From NCBI RefSeq assembly GCF_020745735.1, contig NC_083409.1, forward strand, positions 16,354,789 to 16,418,788: 64,000 bases of DNA, in the 5' to 3' direction. The position numbers were made by a program, and so were the translations under genes. The notes under the pieces were generated by a model that was not told the origin of the DNA, ran no database searches, and saw only the letters and a program-made list of their open reading frames with translations. This DNA comes from Hemiscyllium ocellatum (taxonomy: Eukaryota). How positions within the stretch are numbered: position 1 is the stretch's first letter; the number at the start of each line of letters is the position of its first letter. This document shows positions 5,831 through 63,257 of this stretch, in pieces.

Positions 5831-6166
5831 GGGTGGCACGGTGGCAGTGGGTGGCACGGTGGCACAGTGGTTAGCACTGCTGCCTCACAGCGCCTGAGAC
5901 CCGGGTTCAGTTCCCGACTCAGGCGACTGACTGTGTGGAGTTTGCACGTTCTCCTTGTGTCTGCGTGGGTTTCCTCCGGGTGCTCCGGTTTCCTCCCACA
6001 GTCCAAAGATGTGCAGGTCAGGTGAATTGGCCATGCTAAGTTGCCCGTAGTGTTAGTTAAGGGTAAATGTAGGGGTATGGGTGGGTTGCGCTTCGGCGGG
6101 TCGGTGTGGACTTGTTGGGCCGAAGGGCCTGTTTCCACACTGTAAGTAATCTAATCTAAAAAAAAA
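5831..6166 (+). mobile_element. HE1-type tRNA-derived SINE, full length and young, with an 18-bp tandem duplication of its 5' end
   Basis: GGTGGCACGGTGGCACAGTGGTTAGCACTGCTGCCTCACAG head with A/B boxes, CR1/HER1-like tail, (TAATC)n end. Confidence 0.88.
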
Positions 6167-6920: not shown

Positions 6921-7249
6921 CTACACACATTCTGATCTCTTGATGCTCTTGCTGAGGGGAGAGGGGAGGGTCACGTGGGTGAGGGCACAGGAGAAGCGAG
7001 CGTCAGACTCCCAGTCAGACCCAGAGAGGGTCAGCAGGCTGCTGACACTGTAGGTGCTGTCCGAAGCTCGCAGGTAGTTGCTGGTCTGAACCCCATCCGA
7101 AATGATTGCACCGTCCTTCTTCCACTGCACCTCCAGCTCATCGGGATAGAAGTGATTGGCAAGGCACACCAGGGTGGCAGTGCCCTTGGCATTGACCTGC
7201 TCCGGGGAGGGAGGTAGCAGGGTCAGCTTGGGCTGAGAGTTGTCACGGC
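6921..7249 (-). CDS. IGKC: Ig kappa-class light-chain constant exon
   Basis: Acceptor TTGTCTTTCAG at 7250. Intact ORF (S)RDNSQPKLTLLPPSPEQVNAKGTATLVCLANHFYPDELEVQWKKDG...YSVSSLLTLSGSDWESDARFSCALTH...RSECV-stop has C1-set motifs and the penultimate Cys. Confidence 0.96.
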
Positions 7250-8589
7250 CTGAAAGACAAGAGAAACTATTTTAATCCCTGTAATTCAAAGGGATTTCAA
7301 CTCTGTAGGTTCACTGGCAAAACAATCCATTTGAACATTTGTATCCAATACCTAACAAGCCCCATAAAAGGACAGGGACTTTTAAAATTGCTTCTTGTTA
7401 TGTGAGTGTCACTGGAAGGGCCAGCATTTATTATCCATCCCTAATCGCCGCTGAGAAAGTGATAGTGAAAGAGAAGGGACAGTTTTGGACCATCATTTTT
7501 GGAATGTATGTGAGCAGCTGAAAGGGCTATCAATGGGGGAGCATTTCAGTGACAGTGATCAGAACTCAGTGAGATTGAGAGTAGGGATGGAAATGGAGAA
7601 CCACGGAACAAGTGTAAAAGTTTTTATTTGGGAACAAACCATTTTACTAAACAGGTCAGGGATTGGGTAAAAGTAAGCTGAAAGACAAAATGCAGGGATG
7701 AAATTTACTAGGACCTGAGGAAAGCAAAGAGCTGACAGGATGAATTGTGTCCAGATGAAGTCAGTGAAATCCCAGTGATGTTTTATAATCACAGAAAGAA
7801 CAAGAGAATGAAGGAATGTGAGGCCCATTCGAGAGCAGGAAAGGAACTTGTGTGCGGGGGTGGGAGATGGAGCAATGGTTCCTCATGAAAACATTCGGTC
7901 TGTTTTCACAAAAGAGAGGGACAAAGCAGGAACTGTAGTTCAGGAGGAGGACTGTGCAACATTGGAATGGCATCTTTCACATCTGAAAGACTCCCAGTTC
8001 ATCCAAAGAAAAGAAAGATCCATGCTGTCCCCAAGACATTTGCAGACAGTGTGGGACTTGTTTGAAATGTGGTCACTGTTGTAATATAGGAAATGTGCAA
8101 GCCAGATTGTACACAGCAAGATCCCACAAGCAACAATGAACCAAGGAACATTTTGAGTGACGTTTGTTCAGGAATAAATATCAGCCTGAATACAATTCAA
8201 AGAGAAAGTAACTGGAACAGTTGGATGGAAAATGAGAAAAATGAAAGTTAAAGGAGAAGGGAGAATTGTTGGTTAGTGATGGGATTCATTGTTACCAGGA
8301 AATAAAAGGAAAGGGACAGAGCGTTGTGAATGTCATATTGTACTGAGGAAACTTAAAAGTGCAGGGAAGGTCACTATAGAACAAGCTTAAAGGCTTTGTC
8401 TCTTAATGCATGACCCATTCGGAATATGGTCGACAAAGTGGTACCACACAAACCAAGGTAAATCAAGCTTCAAGGAATTTAAACTAATTCAAGAAGGTAG
8501 GGCCTCAGGACACTTTATTAAATCATTCGGATCAAGTACTAGGATAGAGAGTATAGAAAGGATGAGGAATTGAACTTGAGGCCCCGCAG

Positions 8590-16707: not shown

Positions 16708-16739
16708 TCAGTCGGAGTTTGGTTCCTTTACCGAACGTA
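16708..16739 (-). CDS. IGKJ: J segment ([10 protein letters not shown]) fused directly to V, one base out of frame
   Basis: T ACG TTC GGT AAA GGA ACC AAA CTC CGA CTG A|GTAAGT gives the FGxG motif and a canonical phase-1 donor at 16707. No heptamer or nonamer lies between V and J. Confidence 0.95.
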
Positions 16740-17038
16740 AGGGAAGCTCTCACTTTGCTGACAGTAATAATCAGCGACATCCTCATTCTGAACGTTGCTG
16801 ATTGTCAGGGTGAAATGTGTGCTGGACACTTCTGTCCCGGTGAATCTGTTTGAGACTCCTGTGAATAGTGATGCAGCATTGTAGATCAGGAGAGAGGGTT
16901 TCTGTCCTTCCCGCTGCTGGAACCATTCAACATCACCACTGGCACTCTGACTGGATTTACAGGTGATGGTTGCGGTCTGGCCCAGTTCCACTGACAGCAC
17001 CGGGGGAGACTGAGTCATGATGATGTCCCCACTGATAC
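16740..17038 (-). CDS. IGKV: Ig kappa-like V segment (leader part 2 + FR1 to CDR3)
   Basis: Acceptor CTGACCCCTCAG at 17039. Translation [96 protein letters not shown] retains both Cys, the Trp and the DxAxYYC motif. Confidence 0.96.
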
Positions 17039-17224
17039 CTGAGGGGTCAGAGAGGAACACAGTGAAGTCAGAACTGTCACAGAAAGAGCCAGTCAAATGA
17101 GAGATTGTTGGAGACACTGAGCATTCCTCTGGTTTCAGCATTTTCCCTTCAATCACAAGTCAGTGGAATTGGAGTGAAATGGAGAGCAGCTAAAGATTCA
17201 AGGTGGAAGGAGAGAGATTTGTAC

Positions 17225-17273
17225 CTGCGACACAGAATGCCAGGGGCCAGATCAGCTGGGTGTGTGAAATCAT
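17225..17273 (-). CDS. IGKV: Ig light-chain leader exon (MISHTQLIWPLAFCVA/G)
   Basis: ATG at 17273-17271, hydrophobic signal peptide, phase-1 donor G|GTACAA at 17224. It splices in frame to the V exon, giving ...[13 protein letters not shown]. Confidence 0.93.
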
Positions 17274-17900: not shown

Positions 17901-18021
17901 GAAGCTCAATGACATGAACAGCATTGAACAACTTGCAAAAGTCATTAACGCTAATCCCACCTTGGCATTGAGGGAGAGGATCAGCCAGGATCATATTGAA
18001 TGACAGAGCAGCCTCACAAGA

Positions 18022-18844
18022 CCAAACCCAAACCTAAACCCTAATCCTAACCCGAACACTAACCCTAACACTAACCATAACCCAGAACCCAACCCTAACC
18101 TGAACCTGAACCCGAACCCTAACCCGTACCCTAACCCAAACCCTAACCCTAACCCTAACCCTAACCCAAACCCTAACCCTAATTCCAAACCCTAACCCTA
18201 ACCCATACCCTAACCCAAACCCAAACCCTAATCCTAACCCGAACACAAACCCTAACCCTAACCCTAACACAAAACCCAACCCTAACCCGAACCTGAACCT
18301 GAAACCTTACCCANNNNNNNNNNNNNNNNNNNNNNNNNNNNNNNNNNNNNNNNNNNNNNNNNNNNNNNNNNNNNNNNNNNNNNNNNNNNNNNNNNNNNNN
18401 NNNNNNNNNNNNNNNNNNNNNNNNNNNNNNNNNNNNNNNNNNNNNNNNNNNNNNNNNNNNNNNNNNNNNNNNNCGAACCTGAACCCGAACCCTAATCCAT
18501 ACCCTAACCTAAACCGTAACCCTAACCCTAACCCTAACCCAAACCCAAACCCCAACCCCAACCCCAACCATAACCCAAACTCTAACCCAAAACCTAACTC
18601 AAACCCGAACCCTAACACAAACCCAAACCCGAACCCAAACCCTAACCTGAACCCAAACCCAAACGCTAACCCTAACCCCAACCCTAAACCTAACCTATAC
18701 CGCAACCCAAACCCAAACCCAAACCCCAACCCCAACCCCAACCCCAACCCCTACCCCAACTCTAACCCAAACTCTAACCCAAAACCTAACCCGAACCCTA
18801 ACCAAACCCAAACCCTAACCCGTAACCTAACCCGTACCCTAACC
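18022..18844. repeat. Degenerate interstitial telomere-like array (CCCTAA with CCCGAA/CCCAAA/CCTGAA variants)
   Basis: Continuous hexamer array on both sides of the N gap. Confidence 0.92.
18314..18473. other. Assembly gap (160 N)
   Basis: Run of Ns inside the array. True array length and left-right linkage depend on scaffolding. Confidence 1.
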
Positions 18845-19499
18845 AGAACATTACTCCTGCTCCCTGTTTCTATCTATGTACGTCTGTGATATCTTCAATC
18901 TCTGCCCCTGGGTATTGATTCCTCTACTCATGGAAAAATTGACTTCTTGTCCACTATATCTCTGCCCCTCATAATCTTATAGCTCTTTATTAGGTCCCCT
19001 TTCAACCTTCACTGCTCCAAGATAAACAAACACAGCCTTTCCAATCCTTCCTCACAGCTCAGACCCTCCAGGCCAGGCAGCATCCTGGGAAATCTCTGCA
19101 TCCTCTCGAGTACAGTCATATTCTTCTCATAATGTCTCTTTCACTAGATTCTCTTTACTCCTAGTCTCACACCTACTTTGCATCTTTCTCTCTCTCTCTC
19201 TCTCCTCTCCCTCAGTCACACTGTTTCATACTCTATCTCATTCTCTCTCTCTCTCTTTCTCTCTGTTTCTATTATTCAACCCCACCATCTCTACCTCCCT
19301 CTAACTCTCTGTCCCTCTCCCTCTCTACTTTTGCTCATCTTACATTTCCTCAGGCTCACTCTACCTCTATCTCATTCACACCCTGTCCTTCTCTCTCTCC
19401 CTCTCTCTCTCTCACTCTCTCTCTCCAAATGGCCCTCTCCCTCTCTCTCTTTCTCTCTCTGTCTTACTCTATCTCCCTCTCTCTTTCTTTCCCACAACA

Positions 19500-24074: not shown

Positions 24075-24195
24075 ATCAAGTGTCCCTCAGGAGGGGAGAG
24101 AGAATGTTCAGGGTCCTGATCCATTTCCCAGCCCAGGCAGTTTGTCTCACGGTGAATGGATGAGATGCCAATTTGGAGCCCAGGTTAGGGACAGG
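24075..24195. repeat. Duplicated block D; inverted paralogue at ~62825-62945
   Basis: AAGTGTCCCTCAGGAGGGGAGAG...CCATTTCCCAGCCCAGGCAGTTTGTCTC matches the reverse complement. Confidence 0.85.
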
Positions 24196-24677
24196 CTCTG
24201 CTTCTCTACAAGAGGCAACTAGAGATCGAGCTGAAAAGGAAAGATTTACTGGGTTATGGGAGAGGGAGGGGCAGTGGGATTAATTGGATCACTCACAGAC
24301 ATGATGGGCTGAATGGTCTCCTCGTGTGCTAGGGGGAGCAGATTTAGGACTGAATTGAGAAGGAACTTCTTCACCCAGAGGGTGGTGAATCTATGGAATT
24401 CCCTCCCCAGCGAAGTGGTTGAGGTTTCCTCAGTAAATGTTTTTAAAGCTAAGACAGGTAATTTTTTGAACAGAAAATGAATCAAGGGTTTTGGTGAAAA
24501 GGTGGGTAGGGGGAGCTGAGGCCATGAAAAGATCAGTCATGATCTTACAGAATGGCAGAGCAGCCCCAGGGGCCAGAGAGCTTGCTCCTGCTCCTGGTTT
24601 TAATGTTCTTATGTGCTGTCAGATTCCAGGGAGTGCAGACCGTTCACAGTTTTCCCCCATCACAATAACAAACATCC

Positions 24678-24872
24678 AGCTGCTCCGAGCTCCTTCTTTC
24701 ACTTCCTCTCTCGGTGAAGTTTCAACCTTATGCTCTGACAGCCTTTGCAGTTATTTTTTATACTGGGGCTTTCTGCTGTGGTCAGAATCTCTAATAATAA
24801 GTGTCCAATCAGTGACAATCACAGCAGCTAAGAGCAGTCAGGACTGAGGAGCCAGGCTCACTGGGAAACACA
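24678..24872 (-). promoter_or_regulatory. Conserved promoter-like block, copy 1 (CCAAT and TATA both intact)
   Basis: CCAATCAG at 24805, RUNX TGTGGT at 24777-24782, TATAAAAAA at 24762-24754 (minus) and GGAAGTGAAA at 24706-24697 (minus). About 96% identical to copies 2 and 3. Confidence 0.55.
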
Positions 24873-25093
24873 TTGGGAAGATCAAAGCCATCCTCTTCAG
24901 GTCCCGGTACAACCTCCATCCCTCTCCCTGAGCACTGTCTGCTGCTCAACCAGACTCTTCACAAAAACAGAATACCTCAGCAGGTCTGGCGGCATCTGGG
25001 GAAAGAAATCAACGTTAACATGTCGGGTGGTGTGACCTTTGCTCAGAACAGTTCTGAAGAAGGTTCACTTGTCCCAAAATGTTAACTGGATTA

Positions 25094-26160
25094 GTGGTGC
25101 TGGAAGAGCACAGCAGTCCAGGCAGCTTCCAAAGTGCAGCGAAATCGACGTTAAGACCCCTTAATAAGGAATAAAGGCAGTGAGCCTGAAGCGTGGAGAG
25201 ATAAGCTAGAGGAGGGTGGGGGTGGGGAGAAAGTAGCATAGAGTACAATGGGTGAGTGTGGGAGGGGATGAAGGTGATAGGTCAGGGAGGAGAGGGTGGA
25301 GTGGATAGGTGAAAAAGGAGACAGGCAGGTAGGGTAAGTCCGGACAAGTCATGGGGACAGCTGGAAGTTGGGGACTAGGATGAGGTGGGGGAAGGGAAAA
25401 TGAGGAAACTGCTGAAGTCCACATTGATGCCCTGGGGTTGAAGTGTTCCGAGGTGTAAGATGAGGCGTTCTTCCTCCAGGCGTCTGGTGGTGAGGGAGTG
25501 GCGGTGAAGGAGGCCCAGGACCTCCATGTCCTCAGCAGAGTGGGAGGGGGAGTTGAAATGTTAGGCCATGGGGTGGTGTGGTTGATTGGTGCGGGTATCC
25601 CAGAGATGTTCCCTAAAGTGCTCTGCTAGGAGGCGCCCAGTCTCCCCAATGTAGAGGAGACCGCATCGGTAGCAACCGATACAATAAATGATATTGGTGG
25701 ATGTGCAGGTAAAACTTTGATGGATGTGGAATTCTCCTTTAGGTCCTTGGATAGACGTGAGTGAGGAGGTGTGGGCACAGGTTTTACAGTTCCTGCAGTG
25801 GCAGGGGAAAGTGCCAGGATGGGAGGGTGGGTTGTAGGAAGGCGTGGACCTGACCAGGTAGTCACGGAGGGAATGGTCTTTGCGGAAGGCGGAAAGTGGT
25901 GGGGAGGGAAATATATCCCCGGTGGTGGGGTCCTTTTGGAGGTGGCAGAGATGTCGGCGGATGATTTGGTTTATGCAAAGGCTTGTAGGGTGGAAGGTGA
26001 GCACCAGGGGCGTTCTGTCCTTGTTACAGTTGGAGGGGTTGGGTCTGAGGGTGGAGGTGCGGGATGTGGACGAATTGCGTTGGAGGGCATCTTTAACCAC
26101 GTGGGAAGGGAAATTGCGTTCTCTAAAGAAAGAAGCCATCTGGTGTGTTCTATGATGGAA
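25094..26160 (-). mobile_element. Penelope-like (Neptune-type) element 3' end: Cys-rich linker, GIY-YIG endonuclease and pLTR
   Basis: ORF contains GTFPCHCRNCKTC and IIYCIGCYRCGLLYIGETGRLLAEHFREH. Confidence 0.88.
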
Positions 26161-26889
26161 CTGGTCTGCTTTCTCTCCACAGATGGTGCCAGACCTGCTG
26201 AGCCTTTCCAGCAATTTCAGTTTTTGTTCCTCATTTACAACAAACACAGCTTTTTCAGCTTTTATTTAGTATCAGATTCCTCCCAATTCTGGCCTCATCT
26301 TTGAGGCTGATCTGAGCCCCACAAACCCTTCCAATCACAGAGATCACTCACTGAAAACCTCAGCCGTTGCTTTGGGACTCCAAACATGACCATTCTAATA
26401 TTGTCCTGGGCCACATCTCAGCCACTGCCCTCTGTAACCTTCAGCTCATCCCAAACTCTGCTGCCCGTATCCGAACTTGCACCAAGTCCCATCCCCATCC
26501 TCCACCGTCCTCACTGAGCAACATTGGCTACTGGTCCAACAACACCTCGATTTTCAAATTCTCATCCTTGTTCTGAAGTCCCTCCTTGTCCTTCCACCCT
26601 CCCCATCTCTGTCACCTCCTCCTAACTGCCTCACTCAGTGTGGTCAGCAATCTTGGATAGATGACTCTCTGTTTCTTCATCCAAGTCATTGAGAAATATT
26701 GTGTGAAGCTGAGGTCCCAGCACAGATCCCTGGGGACACCACTATTCACATCTTGCTCATTGGAGGACACATACGTTATCCCTCCATTCTGTCTCCTTTC
26801 TCCAAATTAATTCCTGACCAAAGGCAAATGCTTTTCTCTAACTCATTATGTTTCCACATTGATGAACAGTCTCTCAAACAGTGAAACTA

Positions 26890-30022: not shown

Positions 30023-31161
30023 TAGAGTGGAAAAGTGTGGCCCTGGAAAAGCACAGCAGGTCAGGCAACATCTGTGGGACAGGAGAATCGATGTTTCGAG
30101 CATCAGCTCTTCATCAGGAAGGTTGGGGGAGTGGAATACGGCTGAGAGATAAATAGGAGGGTGGGGCAGGGGGTGGAGGAAAGTAGCTGGGAAGGGGATA
30201 GGTAGATGCAGGTGGGGGGAGTGATAGTGATAGTTCAGAAGGAATGGTGGAGCAGAATAGGTGGGATGGATGATGGATAGATTTGAAATTTCAAGAGGGT
30301 GGTGTCGAGTTGGAGGATTGGATATTCGTTGGGGGTGGGGGTGGGGGAGGGGAGATAACGAACTAGTGAAAACAACATTGATGCCGTGCGATTGGGGGGG
30401 TCCCAAGGTGGAAAATGAGGCATTCTTCTTCCAGACATAGTAGCTCAGTGGTTAGCACTGCTGCCTTACAGCACTAGGAACCCAGTTTCGATTCCAGCCT
30501 TCGGCGACTGTCTGTGTGGAGGTTGCACATTCTCCTCATGTCCGGGTTTCCTCCAGGTTTCCTCCGTGTGCACAGTCCAAAGATGTGCAACTCAGGTGAA
30601 TGGGCCATTCTATATGGCCCGCAGTGTTAGGTACATTAGTCAGAGGGAAATGGGTCTCTGTGGGTTACTCTTCGGAGGGTCGGTATGAACTGGTTGTGTC
30701 AAAGGGCCTGTTTCCAATTTCTAGGGAACCTAATCTAATCAAAATGTGTAGGTTAGCTGAATTGGCCATACTAAATTGCTCATAGTGTTATGTGCATTAG
30801 TCAGGGGTAAATATAGGGTAGGGGAATGAGTCTGGGTGGGTTACTCTTCAGAGGATTGGTATGGACATGTTGGGACGAAGGGCCTGTTTCCACACTGTCG
30901 GGAATCTAATCTAATCTGATGATACTTCGGGTGGCTTGGAGTTGGCAGTGGAGGAGGGGGATTTGAAGTGTCCGGCCACAGGATGGTGGAGTTGTTTGGT
31001 GCATGTGTCCCAGAAATGTTCCACAAGTCATCCTTCCCAACATTCCTGATGACGGCATTCTGCCCAATTCTCCTGCTCCCCGGATGCTGCCTGACCTGCT
31101 GCACTTTTCCAGCGCCTCACTTTCCGACTCTGACCTCCAACATCTGCAGTCCTCACTTTCT
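30023..31161. mobile_element. Penelope-derived element with inverted pLTR ends and a ~12-bp TSD, containing nested SINE sequence
   Basis: ACTATTCGAGGC at 30011-30022 and ACTATTCGAAGC at 31162-31173. Confidence 0.7.
30440..30915 (+). mobile_element. HE1-type SINE with a duplicated 3' half, nested in a Penelope-like element
   Basis: Head at 30440, two successive tail segments ending in (TAATC)n. Confidence 0.75.
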
Positions 31162-32660: not shown

Positions 32661-32972
32661 GGGCGGCACGTTGGCACAGTGGTTAGCACTGCTGCCTCAC
32701 AGCGCCAGAGACCCGGGTTCAATTCCTGACTCAGGTGACTGTCTGTGTGGATTTTGCACATTCTCCCTGTGTCTGCGTGGGTTTTCTCCGGGTGCTCCGG
32801 TTTCCTCTCACAGTCCAAAGATGTGCAGGCCAGGTGAATTGGCCATGCTAAATTGCCCGTAGTGTAAGGTAAAGGGGTAAATATAGGGGAATGGATGGGT
32901 GTGGATCGGTGTGGACTTGTTGGGCCGAAGGGCCTGTTTCCACACTGTAAGTAATCTAATCTAATCTAATCT
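32661..32972 (+). mobile_element. HE1-type SINE, young, inserted into a CR1 fragment
   Basis: Near-identical to the 5831 copy, with a (TAATC)4 tail. Confidence 0.88.
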
Positions 32973-33479
32973 CACTTCCAAAGGATGGCCCCTTCTGAGG
33001 CTGTGCCCTCAGGTCCCAGTCTCTCTGCCAAGTGGAAACATCTTCTCCATGTCTACTCTATCCAGGCCTCTCAGTATACTGTATGTTTCACAGAGATTTC
33101 CACTCATCCTTCTCAACTCCATCGAGTACTGACCGAGTACAGGCCTCAACCACTCCTCATACAAACTTCTTTGTATTCTCTGAGCAATCTCCCTCTGTAA
33201 CTCTGTTAATCTTTTTCCAGATACAAATATGCAGTGTCTGAATTCTCTAATGCCTCTGAGTCTGTTTAAATCACAGGAGGAAGTTCACTTTGGGAAATGA
33301 CCAATTCTCTTTGGCTCTCACACTTTTTCTCATCCCCTTTCTGCTACACTCAGTGCTGGACACACCTCTACACGACTGAATGGCTCCTCAAAAACTGGGA
33401 GAGGACTTAAGGATGCTGCTTTCATCATGTGTGGAGGTTTACCTACAACTTGACAAGTTTTTTTTAATGTATTCATTTC

Positions 33480-35289: not shown

Positions 35290-36950
35290 ATGGACTCCAG
35301 TATTTCTCCCACTACTGATGTCAAGCTAACCGGTCTCTGCCTCCCTTCTTAAATAGTGGGGTTATGTTAGTCACCCTCCAATCCATAGGAACTGCTCCAG
35401 AGTCTAGAATTCTGAAAGATGACCACAAGTGCATCTATTCTTTCTAGTGCCACTTTTTCTTAAGCATTCTGGGGTGAGGAGCTCAGGCTGCCAAAGATAT
35501 TTCATGGCTCCACTTTGCCCTCCTATTTTTTTAAGCTACTCCCCACACTTTCTCTCCTCCTGAAGGGCTTCCTTGTTTTTGATGCTCTGTCGCTGACAAA
35601 GCTTTCCTTCTTGTCCTTTCCTGAACTATCCATATTCCTTGACATCCAGGATCCCAGGAGTTGCTGCCCTTGCCTTTCTTTCTGAGCTGGCCCTGAATTC
35701 TCACTGTCTCACATTAAAAAGCTTCCCACTTTCCAAATGTAGACTGACCTGTAAGTAGCTGCTCCCAGTCTGTATTTGCCAGATCCTGTCTCATGACATT
35801 GAAATTGGCCTTGCCTCACTTTAGACACTTACCTTTCTGCACTACCCTTATTCCTTTCCATAATAATTATAAAACTTATGAACTTATGTTCAATATCTGC
35901 AAAATGCTCACCCACTGACTCTTTAACTATTTGACTGGTTTCATTACCTAGGATTGAGTCCAGCACTGCCCATGTTTAGAGGGACTATCTACATACTGGC
36001 ACCAAAAGCTCGCCTGGATGGACTTTAAACATTCCAGCATTCACACAAAGGCAATCCCAGTTCATGTTAGAGAAGTTGAAACTCCCTACTAACATAACCC
36101 TATTCCTCTCACACCTGTCTGTGATTTACCAACATATCTCCTCCTCTCTCTCCATCTGACTATTGGGAGGTCTATAGTACAATCCCAGCAAAGTGATTAT
36201 TCTTTTTGTATTTTTAGCTTCACCCAGATGGCCTCGTTTGAAGAGCCTTCCAAGGAATGCTCCTTAAATCCAGCAGTGATGGTCTCCTTTATCAATAATG
36301 CAATACACCCACCTCTCCTGCATTCCGTCTATCCCACCTGAGACTTCTCTACCCTGGAATGTTGAGCTGCCAGTCCTATCTTTGTTCAATCATGTCTCAG
36401 CAATTGCAGCAATATAATATTCCCACGTGCTGGTCAATGCTCTCAGTTCAACCTCCTTACTCGTCAAGCTCCTTACATTAAAATAGATACAGTTCAGCTT
36501 TCTGGTCCTCCTGTATTCCTGATCCTGTCCTAGTGGTTACCCAGTGATTTTCTGTGTTGCCCTTATTCTCCCAAGAAGGGAAACATCCAGCATTTCCCCT
36601 GTCACTCCCCTTAAGAATTCTATGCATTTCAATGAGATTCCCTCTCATTCTTCTAAACTCCAGGGATCAGATTCCAAACCTGTTTGACCTTTGCCCATAA
36701 GACAAACGCTCTGTACCTGGAATCAGTCAAGGGAACTATCACTGAACTACACCTAATGCAGCTCCTGTCCTTTCTTCAATAAGGAGCCTGATACTGGACA
36801 CCATACTCCAGATGTGCCCACACCAAGCTCCTAACCCTAACCCCTGTACAGCTGCAGTAAAATGTCCCAGCTTTTAGATTGCATTCCCTTTACAAGGAGC
36901 ACCAATACTCTATCTGCCTCCGGATTCACTTGCTGTAGCTGTGTCCTAAC
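35290..36950 (-). mobile_element. Decayed CR1 ORF2 (endonuclease and RT fragments)
   Basis: Antisense CR1-like sequence with many stops. Confidence 0.65.
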
Positions 36951-36964
36951 TTCGTGATTTTTGT

Positions 36965-37110
36965 CCCCCACATTACACTCCATTCTGCCCAATATTTCTC
37001 CAAAGCCCAGCTGTATCTAATATTCAGCAGGATGGACCCCTTCACTGGGAAATAGTTGTTTGTGACTAGAATAATGACACATCTCTGAGAATCACATTAA
37101 TAATTGTTTT
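36965..37110. repeat. Duplicated block P; direct paralogue at ~56836-56970
   Basis: Shared CTGCCCAATATTT...CAGCTGTATCTAATATTCAGCAGGATGG...TTCACTGGGAAA. Confidence 0.85.
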
Positions 37111-39645: not shown

Positions 39646-41709
39646 TGATGTCCACATGGTCCATCTTCCCATAGGCCCAGTAAACATGGACCTCCTTCCC
39701 ACTGGAACCTCCAATAGGCACCAATAAACATGGACCTCCTTCCCACTGGATGCTTCAGAAGAGACCAGTAAACATGGGCCTCCTTCCCTCAGGACTGTCC
39801 AATATGTGAGCTGCAAACTCCACATCCTCTCCATCACGTAGGTCTCTTATTTCAGTCTTAACGACATTGTCCGTCTCTGCACTACCTCAGCCCCTTGACC
39901 ACAGAAAGCCTAATTCCTGTTTGTCCTGCCTTCTAACTATATGATTCCAATGTCCTCTCCCAGCTTCCTGAAGCCAAATCCCATAAACGCCAGCTTGTCT
40001 GATATGGCGTGGTCTCTTCCATGTCTTTCCATGTGTTATTCCAGAATGACCCCTGACTTCACTGACAGCCAATTGCCTCCATGACCTTTCTCCTCCCTCA
40101 CTCTGTGCCCTGCTGCAGATTCACATTCCCTCCCTCCCCCTTCCATCTTCTCTCGCTGGTCTCCTACCCATTGCTGCTTCCTCCATCCCAGTATTGACAG
40201 CAGAGCCTTCAGACCCCTAGAGCTCTCTGACCCCCTGCCCTTCATCCCTCCCCCTCTCAATTGTTGTGCTATTGAATATACTGTTGAGTGCCATTACTTT
40301 TGGTTCACTGTTCCCTTGCCATTGATTTGCTGATGTAGTCCAGTAAATCTAGTCTGGCGTGTTCCCTGAGGTGGTTCAAGAGCGCTTTCCTTGAGAAAAC
40401 ACTTTTCTGTAAACTGGGTTGTCTGTTTCTCCCAGTCTTTGTGTAAAGGTGAGACTAAGTGTGTGTAAGCTCTTATACAGCACAGACAGAGGTCACTGGG
40501 CCTGTAGTGACTGTTAGTCAAATTAGTCCAATGAGTCCCATTTCCTCAGCCCTTCCTGTATAACCCTGCAATTGTTTCCTTTACACCTATTTGTCCAAAT
40601 GCCCTTTTGAAAGTTGCTGTTGAATCCACTTCCACTCACCTTGCAGACAGTCATCATGAACTCGCTGGATAAAAATGTTCCTATCTTCTTTCTTGGTGTT
40701 CAGACCCTGTCTGAAATGTGTGCCCTCTGGTTACTGACCCTCCTGCCTGGAGAAACAATTTGTCCTGTATTTACTGCATTCAAACTCTCTAATTGGGGAC
40801 CCCTCATTGAGTGAGACCTATTTCCAGCACAGGGGGAGAACATTCAGCCTGTCAGTGAAATGCTGTCATTTAATGGAGCCATCCAGTCAGTCCCACCCCC
40901 TACCCTACTCGATCCTCAGAGCCTTGCAGGTTTATTTCCATCAAGAGCCCATCCAATCTGCCATTGCAATCAATGTTTCTTCACCTGCCTCACCTGAATG
41001 GGCACTAATTTTGAAGTCATTGCCAATTGCTGCAAAAAACAAAGTTCTTTCTGTCGTTTCATATCTCTTGCCCAACAAAATGTAAGGTAATCTCAATGTA
41101 AAGATGGGATTTTGTCTCCACACGGACTGTGCGGTGGTCACCCTTACTGATACTGTCATGGACAGCTACACCAGCAGCAGGTAGGTTGGTGAGGGTGATA
41201 GTGAGTTTGTTTTTCCCTCTTGTTGGTTCCCTCACCACCTGCCCCAGGTCCAGTCTAGCAGCTGAATCAGGTGGAACTTGGCCAGCTTGCTCAGTAGTGA
41301 TGCTTCTGAGCAGCTCTTGAAGGTGGACTTTGAAGTCCCTTACTCAGGGTATATCCTGCATCATTCCCACCCACAGTGCTCCCTCCAAGTGTTGTTCAAT
41401 ATGGAGGAGGACTGACTGCTCAGTTGAGGTTGGAGCGGAGGGCGGTGCTATGTGGTAATCAGCAGGAGGTTTCCTTCCCCATGTTTGACCTGCTGTCATG
41501 AGGCTTCATGGGTTCCATAGTTAATGGTGAGGACTCCCAGGGTAACTCCCTTTCGACTGTACACACCACTGTGTTGCCTCCCCTGCTTGGTCTATCCCGC
41601 CAGTTAAAAACTGAATGAGGGAACAATTCTGTGCAGGTTTCACAGCTTAGAGACAGAGCTGCTGCTGGATTCTGTTTCTGATCTCCGAGTGCAGGTGTGT
41701 GTGTTTGTG

Positions 41710-41904
41710 AGCTGCTCCGAGCTCCTTCTTTCATTTCCTCTCTTGGTGAAGTTACAACCTTCCGATCTGACAGCCTTTGCAGTTATTTTTTATACTGGGG
41801 CTTTCTGCTGTGGTCAGAATCTCTAATAATAAATGTCCGATCAGTGACAATCACAGCAGCTAAGAGCAGTCAGGACTGAGGAGCCAGGCTCACTGGGAAA
41901 CACA
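41710..41904 (-). promoter_or_regulatory. Conserved promoter-like block, copy 2 (CCAAT mutated to CCGAT)
   Basis: 8 differences from copy 1 in ~194 bp by manual alignment. Confidence 0.5.
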
Positions 41905-42320
41905 TTGGAAAGGTCACAGCCATCTTCTTCAGCTCCCAGTACAAACTCCATCCCTCTCCCTGAGCCCTGTCTGCTGCTCAACCAGACTCTTTTCAACCTG
42001 GGCCTCATCTTTGGGGCTGTTCTGAGTCCCACATCTTCCACATCACAAAGATCAGCCACTGAAAATCTCAGCCATCCTGTTGTGAATCCAAACATGGGCA
42101 TTCGAATATTGTGCTTGCACACATCACAGACACTGCACTCACTCTTCCCAAAGTATGCTGCCAATGTCCAGACTTGCACCAACTTCTATTTCCCCAATCC
42201 CCTGCACACCATGTCTACATTGGCTCCTGGAACAGCAACACTTCGGTCATCAAATTCTCATGCTTGTTCTCAAATCCATCCCTGTCCTTCACTCTCCCTA
42301 TCTCTGTAACCTCCTCCAAG
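41905..42320 (+). mobile_element. L2 LINE 3' fragment; paralogues at 24873-24960 plus 26290-26630 (+) and 61975-62430 (-); other L2 pieces at 21890-22030 and 39805-40040
   Basis: IGKxxAIxF...SIPLP...LNQT L2 RT C-terminal motif and the L2 tail. Confidence 0.72.
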
Positions 42321-42559
42321 CTGTGTTGCTCAGTGTGGTCTGCAATCTTGGATAAATGGCTCGCTATTCCTTCATCCAAGTCATTGAGAAATATCATGAA
42401 ATGCTTAGATCCCAGCGCAGATCCCTGGGGACACCAATATTCACATTATTGGAGAGCACACACATCATCCCTCTTCTCTGTCTCCTATATCGAAAGGCCA
42501 CCTACATCCAAATGAATTCCTCACCAAAGACAGATATTTTTCTCTAATTGGCTTAATGG

Positions 42560-52299: not shown

Positions 52300-53500
52300 T
52301 GACTTTTTCCTAGTGAATGTGGTCCATCCTGCTGAGTATTCGATAAAGCTGGGCTTTGGAGAGATATTGGGCAGATGGAGTGTAATGTGGGGACATGAAT
52401 CACAAAGTTAGAACGCAGCTACAGCAAGTGAATCCGGAGGCAGATGTAGTGTTGGTGCTCCTTGTAAAGGGAATGCAATCTAAAAGCAGGGCCGTTTTAC
52501 TGCAGCTGTTAGGATTAGGGGTTTGGTGAGAGCACATCTGGAATATGGTGTCCAGTATCAGGCTCCTTATTGACGGACAGGACCTGCATTGGAAGTAGTT
52601 CAGAGATGGTTCCCTTGACTGATTCCTGGTATGGAGCGATTGTCTTATGGGCAAAGGTCAAACAGGTTTGGAATCTGATCCCTGGAATTTAGAAGAATGA
52701 GATGGAATCTCATTGAAACGTATCAAATTCTTAAGGGGATTGACAGGGGAAATGCTGGATGTTTCCCTTCATGGGAGAGTAAGGGCTACACAGAAAACCA
52801 CTGGGTAACCACTAGGACAGTATCCAGAACACAGGAGGACCAGAAAGCTGAACTGTATCTATTTTAATGTAAGGAGCTTGACGAGTAAGGAGGTTGAACT
52901 GAGAGCATTGACCAGCACGTGGGAATATCATATTGTTGCAATTGCTGAGACATGATTGAAGCAAGATCGGACTGGCAGCTCAACATTCCAGGAAAGAGAA
53001 GTCTCAGGTGGGATAGAGGGAATGCAAGAGAGGTGGGAGCATTGCACTATTGATAAAGGAGACCATCACTGCAAGATTGAAGGAGCATTTCTTGGAAGGC
53101 TCTTCAAATGAGGCCATCTGGGTGAAGTTAAAAATACCAAAAGGACAATCACTTTGCTGGGATTATACTACAGGCCTCCCAATTGTCAGATGGAGAGAAA
53201 GGAGCAGATATGTTGGCAAATCACAGAGAGGTGTGAGAGGAATAGGGTTATATTATTGGGGAATTTCAACTTATCTAGCATGAACTGGGATTGCCTTTGT
53301 GTGAATGGTAGAAATTTTAAAGTCTATCCAGGAGAGCTTTTGGTGCCAGTACATGGGTAGTCCCTCTAAACATGGGCAGTGCTGGACTCAATCCTTGGTA
53401 ATGAAGCCGGTCAAATGGTTGAAGAGTCAGTGGTTGAGCATTTTGGAGATAGTGAACATAACTCCATATGTTTCATAGTTATCATGGAAAGAAGTAAGGG
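52300..53500 (+). mobile_element. CR1 3' fragment followed by a CR1 endonuclease fragment
   Basis: GLYYRPPN...GNFN APE motifs. Confidence 0.75.
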
Positions 53501-53865
53501 TCATCCTCATCTCCATTATACTCACTAGTTGACAAATCTGTACATGGCACGATGGTTCCTCAAAAATTGGGAGAGGAATTAAGGATGCTGGTTTTGTGTT
53601 GAGGTTTACCTACAACTTGAGAAGTAGGACAAGTTTTATAAAACTGCATCACATCTTCATCTAATTGTAGCTCAGTAAAATACCTGTTTCTGGATGCCTG
53701 TGTTTTCCAAATCCCCATGTGATCTGCCATGGGAGTCTCATGTGCTCCTTGTACTAGCTGCCTCTGATAGCTGGTTGGACCACTAGCCAATGTCTAACCA
53801 ACCATTCCTCATCTAGGGGTCCATGAGGTGGCCTCCACTTCCTCATCAGCACTCTGTTCTGAAGT
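53500..53865 (-). mobile_element. Gypsy integrase H2C2 fragment, inverted copy of 55485-55830
   Basis: AHETPMADHMGIWKTQ...FYKTCPTSQVVGKPQHK on the minus strand. Confidence 0.8.
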
Positions 53866-55189
53866 TAACCATGGCGGCACGGGGTCTCAGTGGTTAGCAC
53901 TGCTACCTCACAGTCTCAAAGTCAGGAGATGTTTGTCCAGGCTGTTTCTGTAAGTTCTGAAACATCTGTCTGTGTGTTCCTGGGACCGACTCATATGTGC
54001 TTAGAATAGCGATTTTCACATTTTCATGACCCTGAGAATATTCCTCTGACAGGGATGCAGAAACCTCATGTGCTTCCCAAGTTCATTTTTGCATGGTCTA
54101 GCTCCATTGTTTTTTCCCCACCTCACTTGTTTAACTATCTTCTCTAACAACATGAAAAATGCTTCCAAATCCTTCTCTTCATAGTCATAGAGTCATACAG
54201 CAAACAATCAGGCTCTCCTGCCCTTCATATCGCTGCTGATCAGTAATCACCAAACTGTGTTAATTCCACCCCCCCCCCCACCCCCACCCCCATTTACCTG
54301 CACTTGGTCCATCGCCTTCCATGTCCTGGTATTTTCTGTGCTCATCTGGATCTTTCTTAAATGTTGTGAGAGTAGTTGCCTCCGCCACCTTCTCAAGCAG
54401 CACATTTAATATTTCTAACACCGTCTGGGGAAAAAAGTCCTCAAAATCCCTCTTAACCATTTTTTCATCACGTTCTGTTTATGCCCTCTGGTCACAGAAA
54501 TGTCTGCCATGGGGAAAAGATTCTCACGATTTACTTTGTCTATGCCTTCCAGAATTTTTTAAACCTCAATCAGAAATCCCCCAGAGAAAACAAACCCAGC
54601 CTATCCAGTCTCTCCTCATAACTAAGACAGTCCATTCCAGGGAACATCCTGGTGAGTCTCCTCTCCACCCTCTCCAGTGCAGTCATGTCCTGCCAACAGT
54701 GTTATGACCAGAACTGTACACAGTGTTCCCGATATGGCCTAATCAATGCTCTGTAAATTAACAACAAGACTTCCTTACTCCTATATTCTACACCCTGGCT
54801 AATGATGGCAAGCATCCCATATGCCTTCTTCACCACCCTGTCTAACTGTGCTGATACCTTCCGGGATTGATGGATTTGTACACCAAGGTCCCTTCGTTCC
54901 TCACTACTCCCAAGGAACATAAGAACATAAGAACTAGGAACAGGAGCAGGAGTAGGCCATCTGGCCCTTCGACCCAGCTCTGCCATTCAATAAGATCATG
55001 GCTGATGTTTTCTTGGACTCAGCTCCAATTATCTGCACTCTCACCGTATCTATTAATTCGTTTATTGTTCAAAAAAGATTGGCCTTAGTTTTAAAAATGT
55101 TTATTGAATTAACATCAACTACTTCTTTGGACAAGGAATTTCGTAGATTTACGACGACCTGGGTGAAGAAGTTCCTTCTCAATTCAGTC

Positions 55190-55480
55190 CCTTTGGCCCA
55201 ACAAGTGCACACTGGCCCTCCAAACAGTAACCCACCCAGGCCCTTCCCCTACACTTACCCCTGACTAACACACCTAACACTATGGGCAATTTAGCTTGGC
55301 CAATTCACTTGACCTGTATTTCTTTTGGATTGTGGAAGGAAACTGGAGCACCCGGAGGAAACCCACACAGACACAGGGAGTATGTGCAAATTCCAGACAG
55401 ACAGTCACCCAGGGATGGAATTGAACCCAGGTCCTTGGCACTGTGAGGTAGCAGTGCTAACCACTGAGCACCTGTGCCAC
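55190..55480 (-). mobile_element. HE1-type SINE; its 5' end is mirrored at 53872-53915 (+)
   Basis: Reverse-complement SINE, with a 5' fragment in the mirrored arm. Confidence 0.78.
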
Positions 55481-61187: not shown

Positions 61188-61473
61188 ATGGTGGCTCAGT
61201 GGTTATCACTGCTGCCTCACAGCACCAGGGGCCCAGGTTCAATTCCAGCCTCGGATGTGTGCAGAGTTTGTACATTCTCCCTGTGTCTGTGTGGGTTTCC
61301 TCCCACAGTGCAAAGATCTGCAGGTCAGGTGAATTGGCCATTCTAAATTGCCCACAGTGTTAGGTGCATTAATTAAGAGGGAAATTGGTCTGGATGGGTT
61401 TCTCTTCGGATGGTCAGTGTGGACTTGTTGGGCCAAAGGGTCTGTTTCCACACTGTAGGGAATCTGATCTAAT
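61188..61473 (+). mobile_element. HE1-type SINE
   Basis: Head, body and tail as in the other copies. Confidence 0.78.
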
Positions 61474-62426
61474 CATTAACTAACGAGGTTACACATTGTT
61501 CGGAGTTCCCTAATGTGGGATATAAGGGAATGCTGATGGCTATTTTCCATAGGGAATTTCAGAAGACATTTAAGAACATTTCACAAACGAAACATGGAAT
61601 CAGATCTTGCACTCCACAATCACTTGATGAAGGAGCACCGCTCAGAAAGCTGGTGTTTCCAAATAAACCTGTTGGACTACAATCTGGTATTCTGTGATTT
61701 TTAACTTTGTACACGACAGTCCAACACCGGCACCTCCAAATCATGGAATCGGTTGGAATTTGAGAAATGCATTTACCTTGGGTCAGAAATGGGTCTGTCT
61801 AGGAGACAGAGAGGAAGGGTAATGTGCGTGTGTTCCAGTGAGCCAGATGTGAGTAGTGGTGTTGCCAGGGGTCTGTGCTGGGACCTAAGCTTTTCACGAT
61901 ATTTCTCAATGACTTGGATGTAGAAACAGAGAGCCATATATCCAAGATTGTTGACCACACTGATGTGGCTTGGAGGAGGTCACAGAGATAGGGAGGATGG
62001 AAGGACAGGGAGCGAATTGAGAACAAGGATGAGAAGTTGAAAATCAAGGTGTTGTTGGACCAGGAGCTTATGTCAGTCAGTGAGGATTGTGGTGGTTATG
62101 GTGCGATGGAAGACAGGGGCGGGGGTGTGAGGTGGACTTGGTGTGAGTTTGAACAACGATAGCAGAGTTTGGGATGAGCTGATATTTAAAGAAGGCAGTG
62201 GCTGTGACATGGGCGTGGATAACATTGGAATGGTCACATTTGGCGTACCAAAAAAATGACTGAGATTTTCAGTGGCTGATCTTTATGATGTGGAGGACTT
62301 GGGCCTCAAATCAACCTCAAAGATGAGGCCAAAGTTATAAAGAGTCTGGTTGAGCAGCAGACAGTGCTCAGGGAGAGGGATGGAGTTTGTACCGGGAGCT
62401 GAAGAGGATGACTTTGATCTTCCCTA

Positions 62427-62621
62427 TGTGTTTCCCAGTGAGCCTGGCTCCTCAGTCCTGACTGCTCTTAGCTGCTGTGATTGTCACTGATTGGACACTT
62501 ATTATTAGAGATTCTGACCACAGCAGAAAGCCCCAGTGTAAAAAATAACTGCAAAGACTGTCAGATCGCAAGGTTGAAACTTCACCAAAAGAGGAAGTGA
62601 AAGAAGGAGCTCGGAGCAGCT
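62427..62621 (+). promoter_or_regulatory. Conserved promoter-like block, copy 3, inverted (TATA mutated to TGTA)
   Basis: 7 differences from copy 1; ATTGG at 62490, TGTAAAAAA at 62537, GGAAGTGAAA at 62593. Confidence 0.5.
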
Positions 62622-63257
62622 GGGTATTTGTTACTGAGACGGGAGAAAACTGTGAACCAACTCCACTCCCTGGAATCTGACAACACAGGAGGCGGCCATT
62701 CAATCCATCATGCCTTTTAATTACCCAATTAGCCCCATTGCTCTCTCCCCATAACTCAGCAATTCTTTCCTATTGCGCTCAATCTCCAATTCCCTCTTAT
62801 AGACCTCATGACCACAGAGTGATACTGCTCTGAAGCTGGGCTTCAAATTGGCATCTCATTCATTCATTGGGAGACAAACTGCCTGGGCTGGGAAATGGAG
62901 CTCAGGATCCTGAACATTCCCTCTCCCCTCCTGAGGAACACTTCATTTGGTTTTGCATATTCACTTGTGGGAAGTGGCTTCACCGGCTGGGCCAACATTT
63001 TTTACCCTGTCCCTAGTTGCCCTGGAGAAGGCGGTGGGAAGCTGCCTTCTGGAATTGTTAGCGTCCACAAGCTGTAAATTGACTCACAATGCTCTTGGGG
63101 AGGGAATGCCAGCATTTTGACCCAGCAACAGTGAAGGAACAGTGATACATTTCCAAGTCAGGATGCTAAGCTTTTTTTGAAGGGAACTTGCAGCTCACAG
63201 TGTTCCCGTGTATCTGCTGCTCTTGTTCTCAATGGAAGTGAACGTGGGTTTGGAAGG

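Follow-up and report, generated by a model that had tools for sequence, protein, structure and literature searches.

A conserved non-coding block upstream of shark kappa light-chain genes is a candidate enhancer-type regulatory module

Introduction

How sharks activate their hundreds of independent antibody miniloci, confine each cell to a single product and direct hypermutation to these loci is a standing question of the field, and in a search of the open-access literature no enhancer defined by its function came to light for any antibody gene of a cartilaginous fish. A stretch of 64,000 nucleotides from Hemiscyllium ocellatum (NC_083409.1, positions 16,354,789 to 16,418,788 of the forward strand; hereafter the window, with its first letter as position 1) bears on this matter, since a sequence of about 195 bp occurs three times in it almost unchanged, amid duplicated DNA that has diverged far more and in the company of a kappa light-chain gene. 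The locus thus raises the question of what this sequence is and why it has been kept. A first-pass annotation, made from the window alone, had taken it for a promoter-like module aimed at the immunoglobulin (Ig) gene, either an upstream promoter or enhancer of light-chain (IgL) clusters, possibly driving sterile transcripts, or else exon 1 of an IRF-responsive gene since lost.

A short block set in more divergent flanks

The three copies, reported to differ at 7-8 positions, are borne out by an alignment of 195 columns with no gaps (24678-24872, 41710-41904 and, as reverse complement, 62427-62621; copies 1, 2 and 3), in which 184 columns are invariant and the pairwise differences at 7-8 positions correspond to 95.9-96.4% identity. 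A profile built from these copies finds no further one in the 64-kb window. The size of 195 bp holds for the core and fails for the limits, since conservation extends to 282, 348 and about 470 bp depending on the copies compared. Specifically, the self-comparison of the window yields an indel-free block of 282 bp common to all three copies (24678-24959, 41710-41991 and 62340-62621), 94-96% identical in pairs, of which the 87 bp beyond the core are 91-95% identical. Copies 1 and 3 have 348 bp in common (24612-24959 and 62340-62687) at 93.7% identity, with 83% in the added 66 bp (24612-24677), and copies 1 and 2 are 94.3% identical over 282 bp. The core edge at 24678 falls within a CAGCTG E-box (24677-24682).

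The block is bordered by flanks that are colinear between the copies, at 26290-26844, 42001-42547 and 61756-62331 on the far side from the V gene (copies 1, 2 and 3, respectively) and at 24075-24328 and 62688-62946 on the V-ward side (copies 1 and 3). Identity in these flanks is 74.8-80.1%, gaps occupy 21-75 columns of their alignments, and the far-side flank contains 37-75 gap columns versus no indel in the 282-bp block. The contrast between core and flank noticed at first pass holds when it is quantified, with about 96% identity in the block versus 75-80% in the flanks and Fisher p values from 1e-9 to 3e-13 (1.2e-9, 6.9e-10 and 2.9e-13 for the three copy pairs).

A deeper footprint emerges from the comparison of copy 3 with distant paralogs in a second shark, Chiloscyllium punctatum (locus L002, see below). 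In 30-bp windows, about 470 bp of copy 3 (62243-62711, plus strand) are 70-96% identical to these paralogs, and most windows outside this interval are at most 60% identical. The first ~100 bp of the far-side flank of copy 1 (26290-26844, minus strand) are part of this footprint. Beyond both the 195-bp core and the 282-bp block, a far-side sub-block at 62273-62302 (42030-42060 in copy 2), which contains TGTGATGTGGAGGAC, retains 83-90% identity in the comparison with the distant paralogs as well; its equivalent in copy 1 is split off by an insertion.

Other identities of the block were considered and rejected. A coding exon is incompatible with stops in all six frames of all copies, and in the longest frame that the copies share, almost all substitutions alter the amino acid; the open reading frame (ORF) across the block matches no Pfam family. 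As to a structured RNA, the folding z-scores are -0.29 and +0.04, and no Rfam match is obtained. Lastly, the CpG observed/expected ratio is 0.18-0.19 in the block versus 0.23 in the whole window, at variance with a CpG island.

Arrangement of the copies around a kappa cluster

The window contains a single recognisable light-chain gene, here named cluster 1. Its kappa VJ gene (16708-17273, minus strand) matches the V-set domain with an E value of 4.6e-18 and is germline-joined, and in a protein search the translation of its V matches shark kappa chains, the best being from C. punctatum with 89% identity. The leader is intact and a GTAAGT donor follows the J, which lies one base out of frame (...TTCCCTTACGTTCGGTAAAGGAACC...); the gene next to copy 1 is a dead one. 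The VJ gene has its own promoter on the minus strand, in which an octamer-like ATTTACAT (17387-17380) precedes a TATA box (17340-17333). The kappa-type C exon lies within an open frame at 6924-7271 (minus strand), and its amino-acid identity with the corresponding exon of L002 is 81%. The distance from J to C in cluster 1, about 9.4 kb, is long for a shark cluster; the whole L002 gene measures 4.4 kb.

Copy 1 (24612-24959, minus strand) faces the VJ gene from a distance of 7.3 kb upstream. It is bordered on both sides by inserted repeats, at 24347-24614 and 24960-26289, the latter insertion separating the copy from its far-side flank. Within it, 25088-26164 is missing from the otherwise colinear L001, a cluster of C. 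punctatum, and was therefore inserted after the separation of the two cluster copies; a 228-aa ORF at 25561-26247 on the minus strand has no Pfam match. Copy 3 (62340-62687, plus strand) is inverted and uninterrupted and points past the end of the window.

Copy 2 (41710-41991, minus strand) is an orphan, because no V or C exon follows it and those of cluster 1 are the sole ones in the window. Its V-ward side is truncated inside the E-box (CAGCT|C at 41710), and its V-ward flank (40814-41692) matches that of the inverted copy in L002, which suggests that roughly 150 bp were deleted. Copy 2 also carries 10 private changes in 282 bp versus 3-5 in the other copies. The notion that the module is aimed at the Ig gene is hence confirmed for copy 1, which faces the VJ gene at 17273-16708 on the minus strand, and finds no counterpart for copy 2, which has neither V nor C exon in the window to face.

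Several other repeats populate the window. Between the upstream unit and the V gene, a tandem-repeat array (18017-18850) lies on either side of a run of N (18314-18473). Leaving the block aside, the youngest duplicate in the window is an inverted pair of 1.2 kb (35844-37056 and 52302-53501) with 89.6% identity, which probably represents a recent transposon. SINE-like repeats of about 300 bp with a tRNA-like start, GGCACAGTGGTTAGCACTGCTGCC, are found at 5849-6165, 30437-30744, 32661-32976, 55185-55480 and 61188-61475, and the same family is present in L001 and L002.

Recurrence of the block in a second shark

Four loci of C. punctatum (L001-L004, assembly GCA_003427335.1), each at most about 92% identical to the window, were used for comparison. 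The block lies upstream of a kappa V, in the orientation of copy 1, in both of the loci that are informative on this point: at 3269-3549 in L001, 6.45 kb upstream of V, and at 4951-5228 in L002, 4.8 kb upstream of V. L003 and L004 span only 2.2-2.7 kb upstream of V and were left out of the positional count. The expected co-occurrence with IgL clusters in another shark is thereby found in two of two informative loci. A second block in L002 (1062-1350) is inverted and back to back with the first, in an arrangement like that of copies 2 and 3. The two L002 blocks are 3.6 kb apart and are yet the least similar pair (65.6%), which points to two clusters that were joined head to head long ago and have not been homogenised. 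The 55 kb of C. punctatum loci contain no other copy, and none lies downstream of a C exon in the 6.9 kb of the window or the 10 kb of L002 that extend beyond it.

L001 is a cluster of the copy 1 type: over 5.5 kb of flank its identity to the window is 92.0%, and a SINE-like insertion and part of the far-side insertion are common to L001 and copy 1. Over 282 bp, the L001 block is 95.4% identical to copy 1 and 96.8% identical to copy 3, although the latter belongs to a different cluster type with flanks of 75-81% identity. Moreover, 31-mers of the block are present in sequencing runs of at least eight other organisms, and contigs of four of them (organisms B, D, E and F) span the block and its flanks. 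The block contig of organism E is 96% identical (10 differences in 263), and its flank contigs are 83-86% identical.

These data bear on a possible origin of the block as a piece of a transposon or LTR lying near Ig genes by chance, an origin that the first-pass annotation had itself raised against its proposal. The region is indeed rich in repeats, and the minus strand of the core begins with TGT; such an origin is nevertheless highly improbable. The TGT edge is no true boundary, as conservation carries on to 24959, and the flanks are colinear on both sides between copies, which means that block and surroundings were duplicated as one. The 119 kb of window and loci contain just six copies: three precede a visible V and share one orientation, two point outward at a sequence edge and one is an orphan. 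Furthermore, a transposon copy is expected to be of uniform age throughout, at odds with 96% identity beside 75-80%. The transposon or LTR origin is therefore not borne out.

Slower change and possible sequence exchange among units

A high similarity between paralogs may stem from constraint or from exchange of sequence between them. A tree of four copies was scaled from flank distances, in which copy 1 and L001 each have a tip of about 4% and are joined by a stem of 4%, the tips of copies 2 and 3 being 13% and 12%. On this tree about 105 changes are expected in the 282-bp block versus about 26 observed, namely five in copy 1, five in L001, 10 in copy 2, three in copy 3, none on the stem, two at sites uniting copy 1 with copy 2, and one at a multi-state site. 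The block has thus changed at about one quarter of the rate of its flanks, that is, about four times more slowly.

Not all of the pattern follows from a slower rate. Pairwise divergence of the block is 3-6% irrespective of a flank divergence of 8-25%, no change falls on the flank-defined stem of copy 1 and L001, no site supports that pairing, and two sites unite the tandem neighbours copy 1 and copy 2. The block is also retained in an orphan unit (copy 2) and beside an out-of-frame VJ gene (copy 1). All this would be in keeping with a block that has little or no function today and whose similarity is due in the main to gene conversion or unequal exchange among the many kappa units. This explanation is unlikely as the main one, in that conversion alone leaves the sharp, shared boundaries and the fixed position and orientation unexplained, and every branch, tips included, carries fewer changes than the flanks predict. 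Moreover, what the distant paralogs retain are specific short motifs rather than whole tracts, with a spacing of exactly 14 nt whose own bases vary, and the adjacent L002 copies are the least similar of all, so that neighbours there have not been homogenised.

The closest pair calls for caution in another respect. Between copy 1 and L001, the 348-bp block is 94.2% identical versus 92.0% for the flanks, a difference without statistical significance (Fisher p = 0.18), and identity rises to 95% in some windows derived from repeats. Since the block barely exceeds the flanks in this pair, constraint on the recent branches is weak or uneven. Taken together, the contrast between 96% and 75-80% arises mainly from slower change in the block, to which exchange between copies may add; some gene conversion fits both the uncoupled divergence of the block and the sites that copies 1 and 2 have in common.

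Factor sites and promoter boxes across six copies

The content of the block was compared across six copies, that is, copies 1-3 of the window and three from C. punctatum, L001 (Cp1), L002a (Cp2a) and L002b (Cp2b), with motif assignments that are post hoc consensus matches. The two L002 copies are distant paralogs, whose block is 77% identical overall and whose V is 68% identical in amino acids. On the minus strand of copy 1, the motif set listed at first pass is correct, with an inverted CCAAT box (ATTGG, 24809-24805), a RUNX site (24782-24777), TATAAAA (24762-24756) and the PU.1/IRF composite site GGAAGTGAAA (24706-24697), and copy 1 is the only one with both CCAAT and TATA.

The composite site of copy 1 (24697-24706, minus strand) is of the GGAAnnGAAA type, a motif with a frequency of 0.17 sites per kb in the window. 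The site is found in all six copies, its eight specified bases are intact in five of them, and other variation is confined to the 2-nt spacer; the site proposed at first pass is thus kept even in paralogs that are 77% identical overall. The E2A-type E-box CAGCTG (consensus CASSTG; 24677-24682, minus strand) follows 14 nt past the composite site, and both the E-box and this exact spacing are found in all five untruncated copies, with 3-4 of the 14 spacer bases changed in the distant paralogs. The RUNX/CBF site ACCACA (24777-24782, minus strand) is retained in five of six copies. On the plus strand, a kB-like site, GGGGCTTTCT (24765-24774), matches 9/10 positions of GGGRNNYYCC and is identical in five of six copies, the exact consensus not being found in the block, and a MEF2 consensus, CTAATAATAA (YTAWWWWTAR; 24791-24800), is perfect in four copies and matches 9/10 positions in each of the two distant paralogs. 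An A/T run followed by AACTGCAAAG (24743-24762, minus strand) includes the TATA box of copies 1 and 2 only. The AACTGCAAA run is invariant in all six copies, and the 49 bp from the RUNX site through AACTGCAAAG differ from L002a by a single base missing in the A run. Neither a Pax5 nor a CTCF motif was found in the block.

The promoter boxes behave differently. TATAAAA (24762-24756, minus strand) is present in copies 1 and 2 only, being replaced by TGTAAAA in copy 3, L001 and L002a and by GGTAAAA in L002b, hence in four of six copies, including both C. punctatum copies that lie upstream of a V. The inverted CCAAT (24805-24809, minus strand) is kept in three copies and lost in the other three, which read ATCGG (copy 2), ACAAG (L002a) and ATTTG (L002b). 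The constrained part of the block is accordingly the set of sites of light-chain-enhancer type, judging from which motifs persist, and the promoter boxes are among the unconstrained positions.

These observations weigh on the reading of the block as an upstream promoter for sterile (germline) transcripts towards V, or as the first exon of a lost IRF-responsive gene. Copy 1 does have the layout of a promoter: the inverted CCAAT lies at about -75 and TATAAAA at -26, and the start predicted near 24736 coincides with an initiator-like TCAGAGC, for which the remaining close copies have TCAGATC, a perfect YYANWYY. The block is also present in sequencing runs that may be RNA (a status that is itself guessed). 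Yet this layout is not maintained, with TATA in two and CCAAT in three of the six copies, and no conserved exon feature appears downstream: no conserved open frame or splice donor lies 3' of the predicted start, and no common GT follows the E-box. The CpG observed/expected ratio of 0.18 in the block equals the background, and the V gene is already served by a TATA and octamer-like promoter of its own. The contigs from all four runs bridge the predicted start and cover the flanks, although contigs cannot show a start. The promoter or first-exon reading is thus weakened and improbable. What stands of the first-pass proposal is an unannotated upstream regulatory element of shark IgL clusters, as suggested by a block that is kept, non-coding, linked to kappa genes and endowed with a PU.1/IRF site, and this element is more likely a predicted enhancer than a promoter.

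Proposed function

With moderate confidence, the block may be regarded as a per-cluster cis-regulatory module of kappa light-chain genes, most likely of the enhancer type. The module, which would belong to each kappa cluster, lies in a fixed orientation 5-7 kb (4.8-7.3 kb) upstream of V. It would act as a candidate B-lineage enhancer, in which the PU.1/IRF composite and the E2A-type E-box at a fixed 14 nt would be combined with the RUNX, kB-like and MEF2-like sites. Factors bound at the block would promote the opening of the cluster and thereby drive the V gene's own promoter, and they might also direct rearrangement or hypermutation. We infer the identity of the bound factors and the enhancer activity from features that are observed directly, namely the conservation of the block, its position and orientation, the persistence of its motifs and the lack of coding or RNA-structure signal.

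Further to the post hoc motif matches, the closest pair and the uncoupled divergence of the block, two points count against this proposal. The block is equally well kept beside the dead gene at copy 1 and is kept in the orphan copy 2, and its position upstream of V is unlike that of the known amniote light-chain enhancers. In birds and mammals, DIVAC elements target hypermutation. Should each shark kappa cluster carry its own upstream enhancer with the grammar of the amniote ones, a more tentative reading taken up below, every minilocus would govern its own expression and rearrangement, and perhaps also attract hypermutation in the manner of those elements.

Comparison with known regulatory elements

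Three known systems offer a term of comparison. PAIR elements (Pax5-activated intergenic repeats) are located in the distal VH region of mouse IgH, contain sites for lymphoid factors and can start non-coding transcripts. Like the shark block, they are repeated, conserved intergenic elements among antibody V genes; unlike them, the shark block has no recognisable Pax5 or CTCF motif. The core of the mouse Ig-kappa 3' enhancer contains PU.1, IRF4/Pip and E2A sites, and the cooperation of IRF4 with E47 is established. It resembles the shark block in the composite Ets-IRF site with a nearby E2A-type E-box and differs from it in location, being 3' of C-kappa rather than upstream of V.

The amniote Ig-lambda enhancer (cIgLambdaE, E-lambda) sits downstream of C, whereas the shark block is found 5-7 kb upstream of V, once per cluster. 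Both are compact, spanning a few hundred bp, and both combine a PU.1-IRF composite with an E-box; where the amniote enhancer has MEF2 and NF-kB sites, the shark block has a MEF2 consensus that is imperfect in the distant paralogs and a kB-like site. In chicken, human and mouse, the Ig-lambda enhancers have conserved E-box, NF-kB, MEF2 and PU.1-IRF4 motifs, and the amniote enhancer tolerates mutation of the PU.1-IRF4 spacer (PMC3972084). The shark block, in which the GGAA and GAAA halves are kept and the 2-nt spacer is variable, parallels this spacer tolerance. The motif order differs, with MEF2 preceding the kB-like site in shark, the kB-like site matches 9/10 positions, and the shark block adds a RUNX site and the invariant AACTGCAAA run; the likeness drawn here is one of motifs.

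It is possible, as a tentative extension of this analogy, that the grammar of MEF2, kB-like, PU.1-IRF and E-box sites is the very one of the amniote lambda and kappa-3' enhancers, carried upstream by each shark kappa cluster. If this were true, the light-chain enhancer grammar would be older than the split between cartilaginous and bony vertebrates, and the block, being short, sharply bounded and clear in its motif grammar, lends itself to a direct test of whether that code reaches back to the origin of jawed vertebrates.
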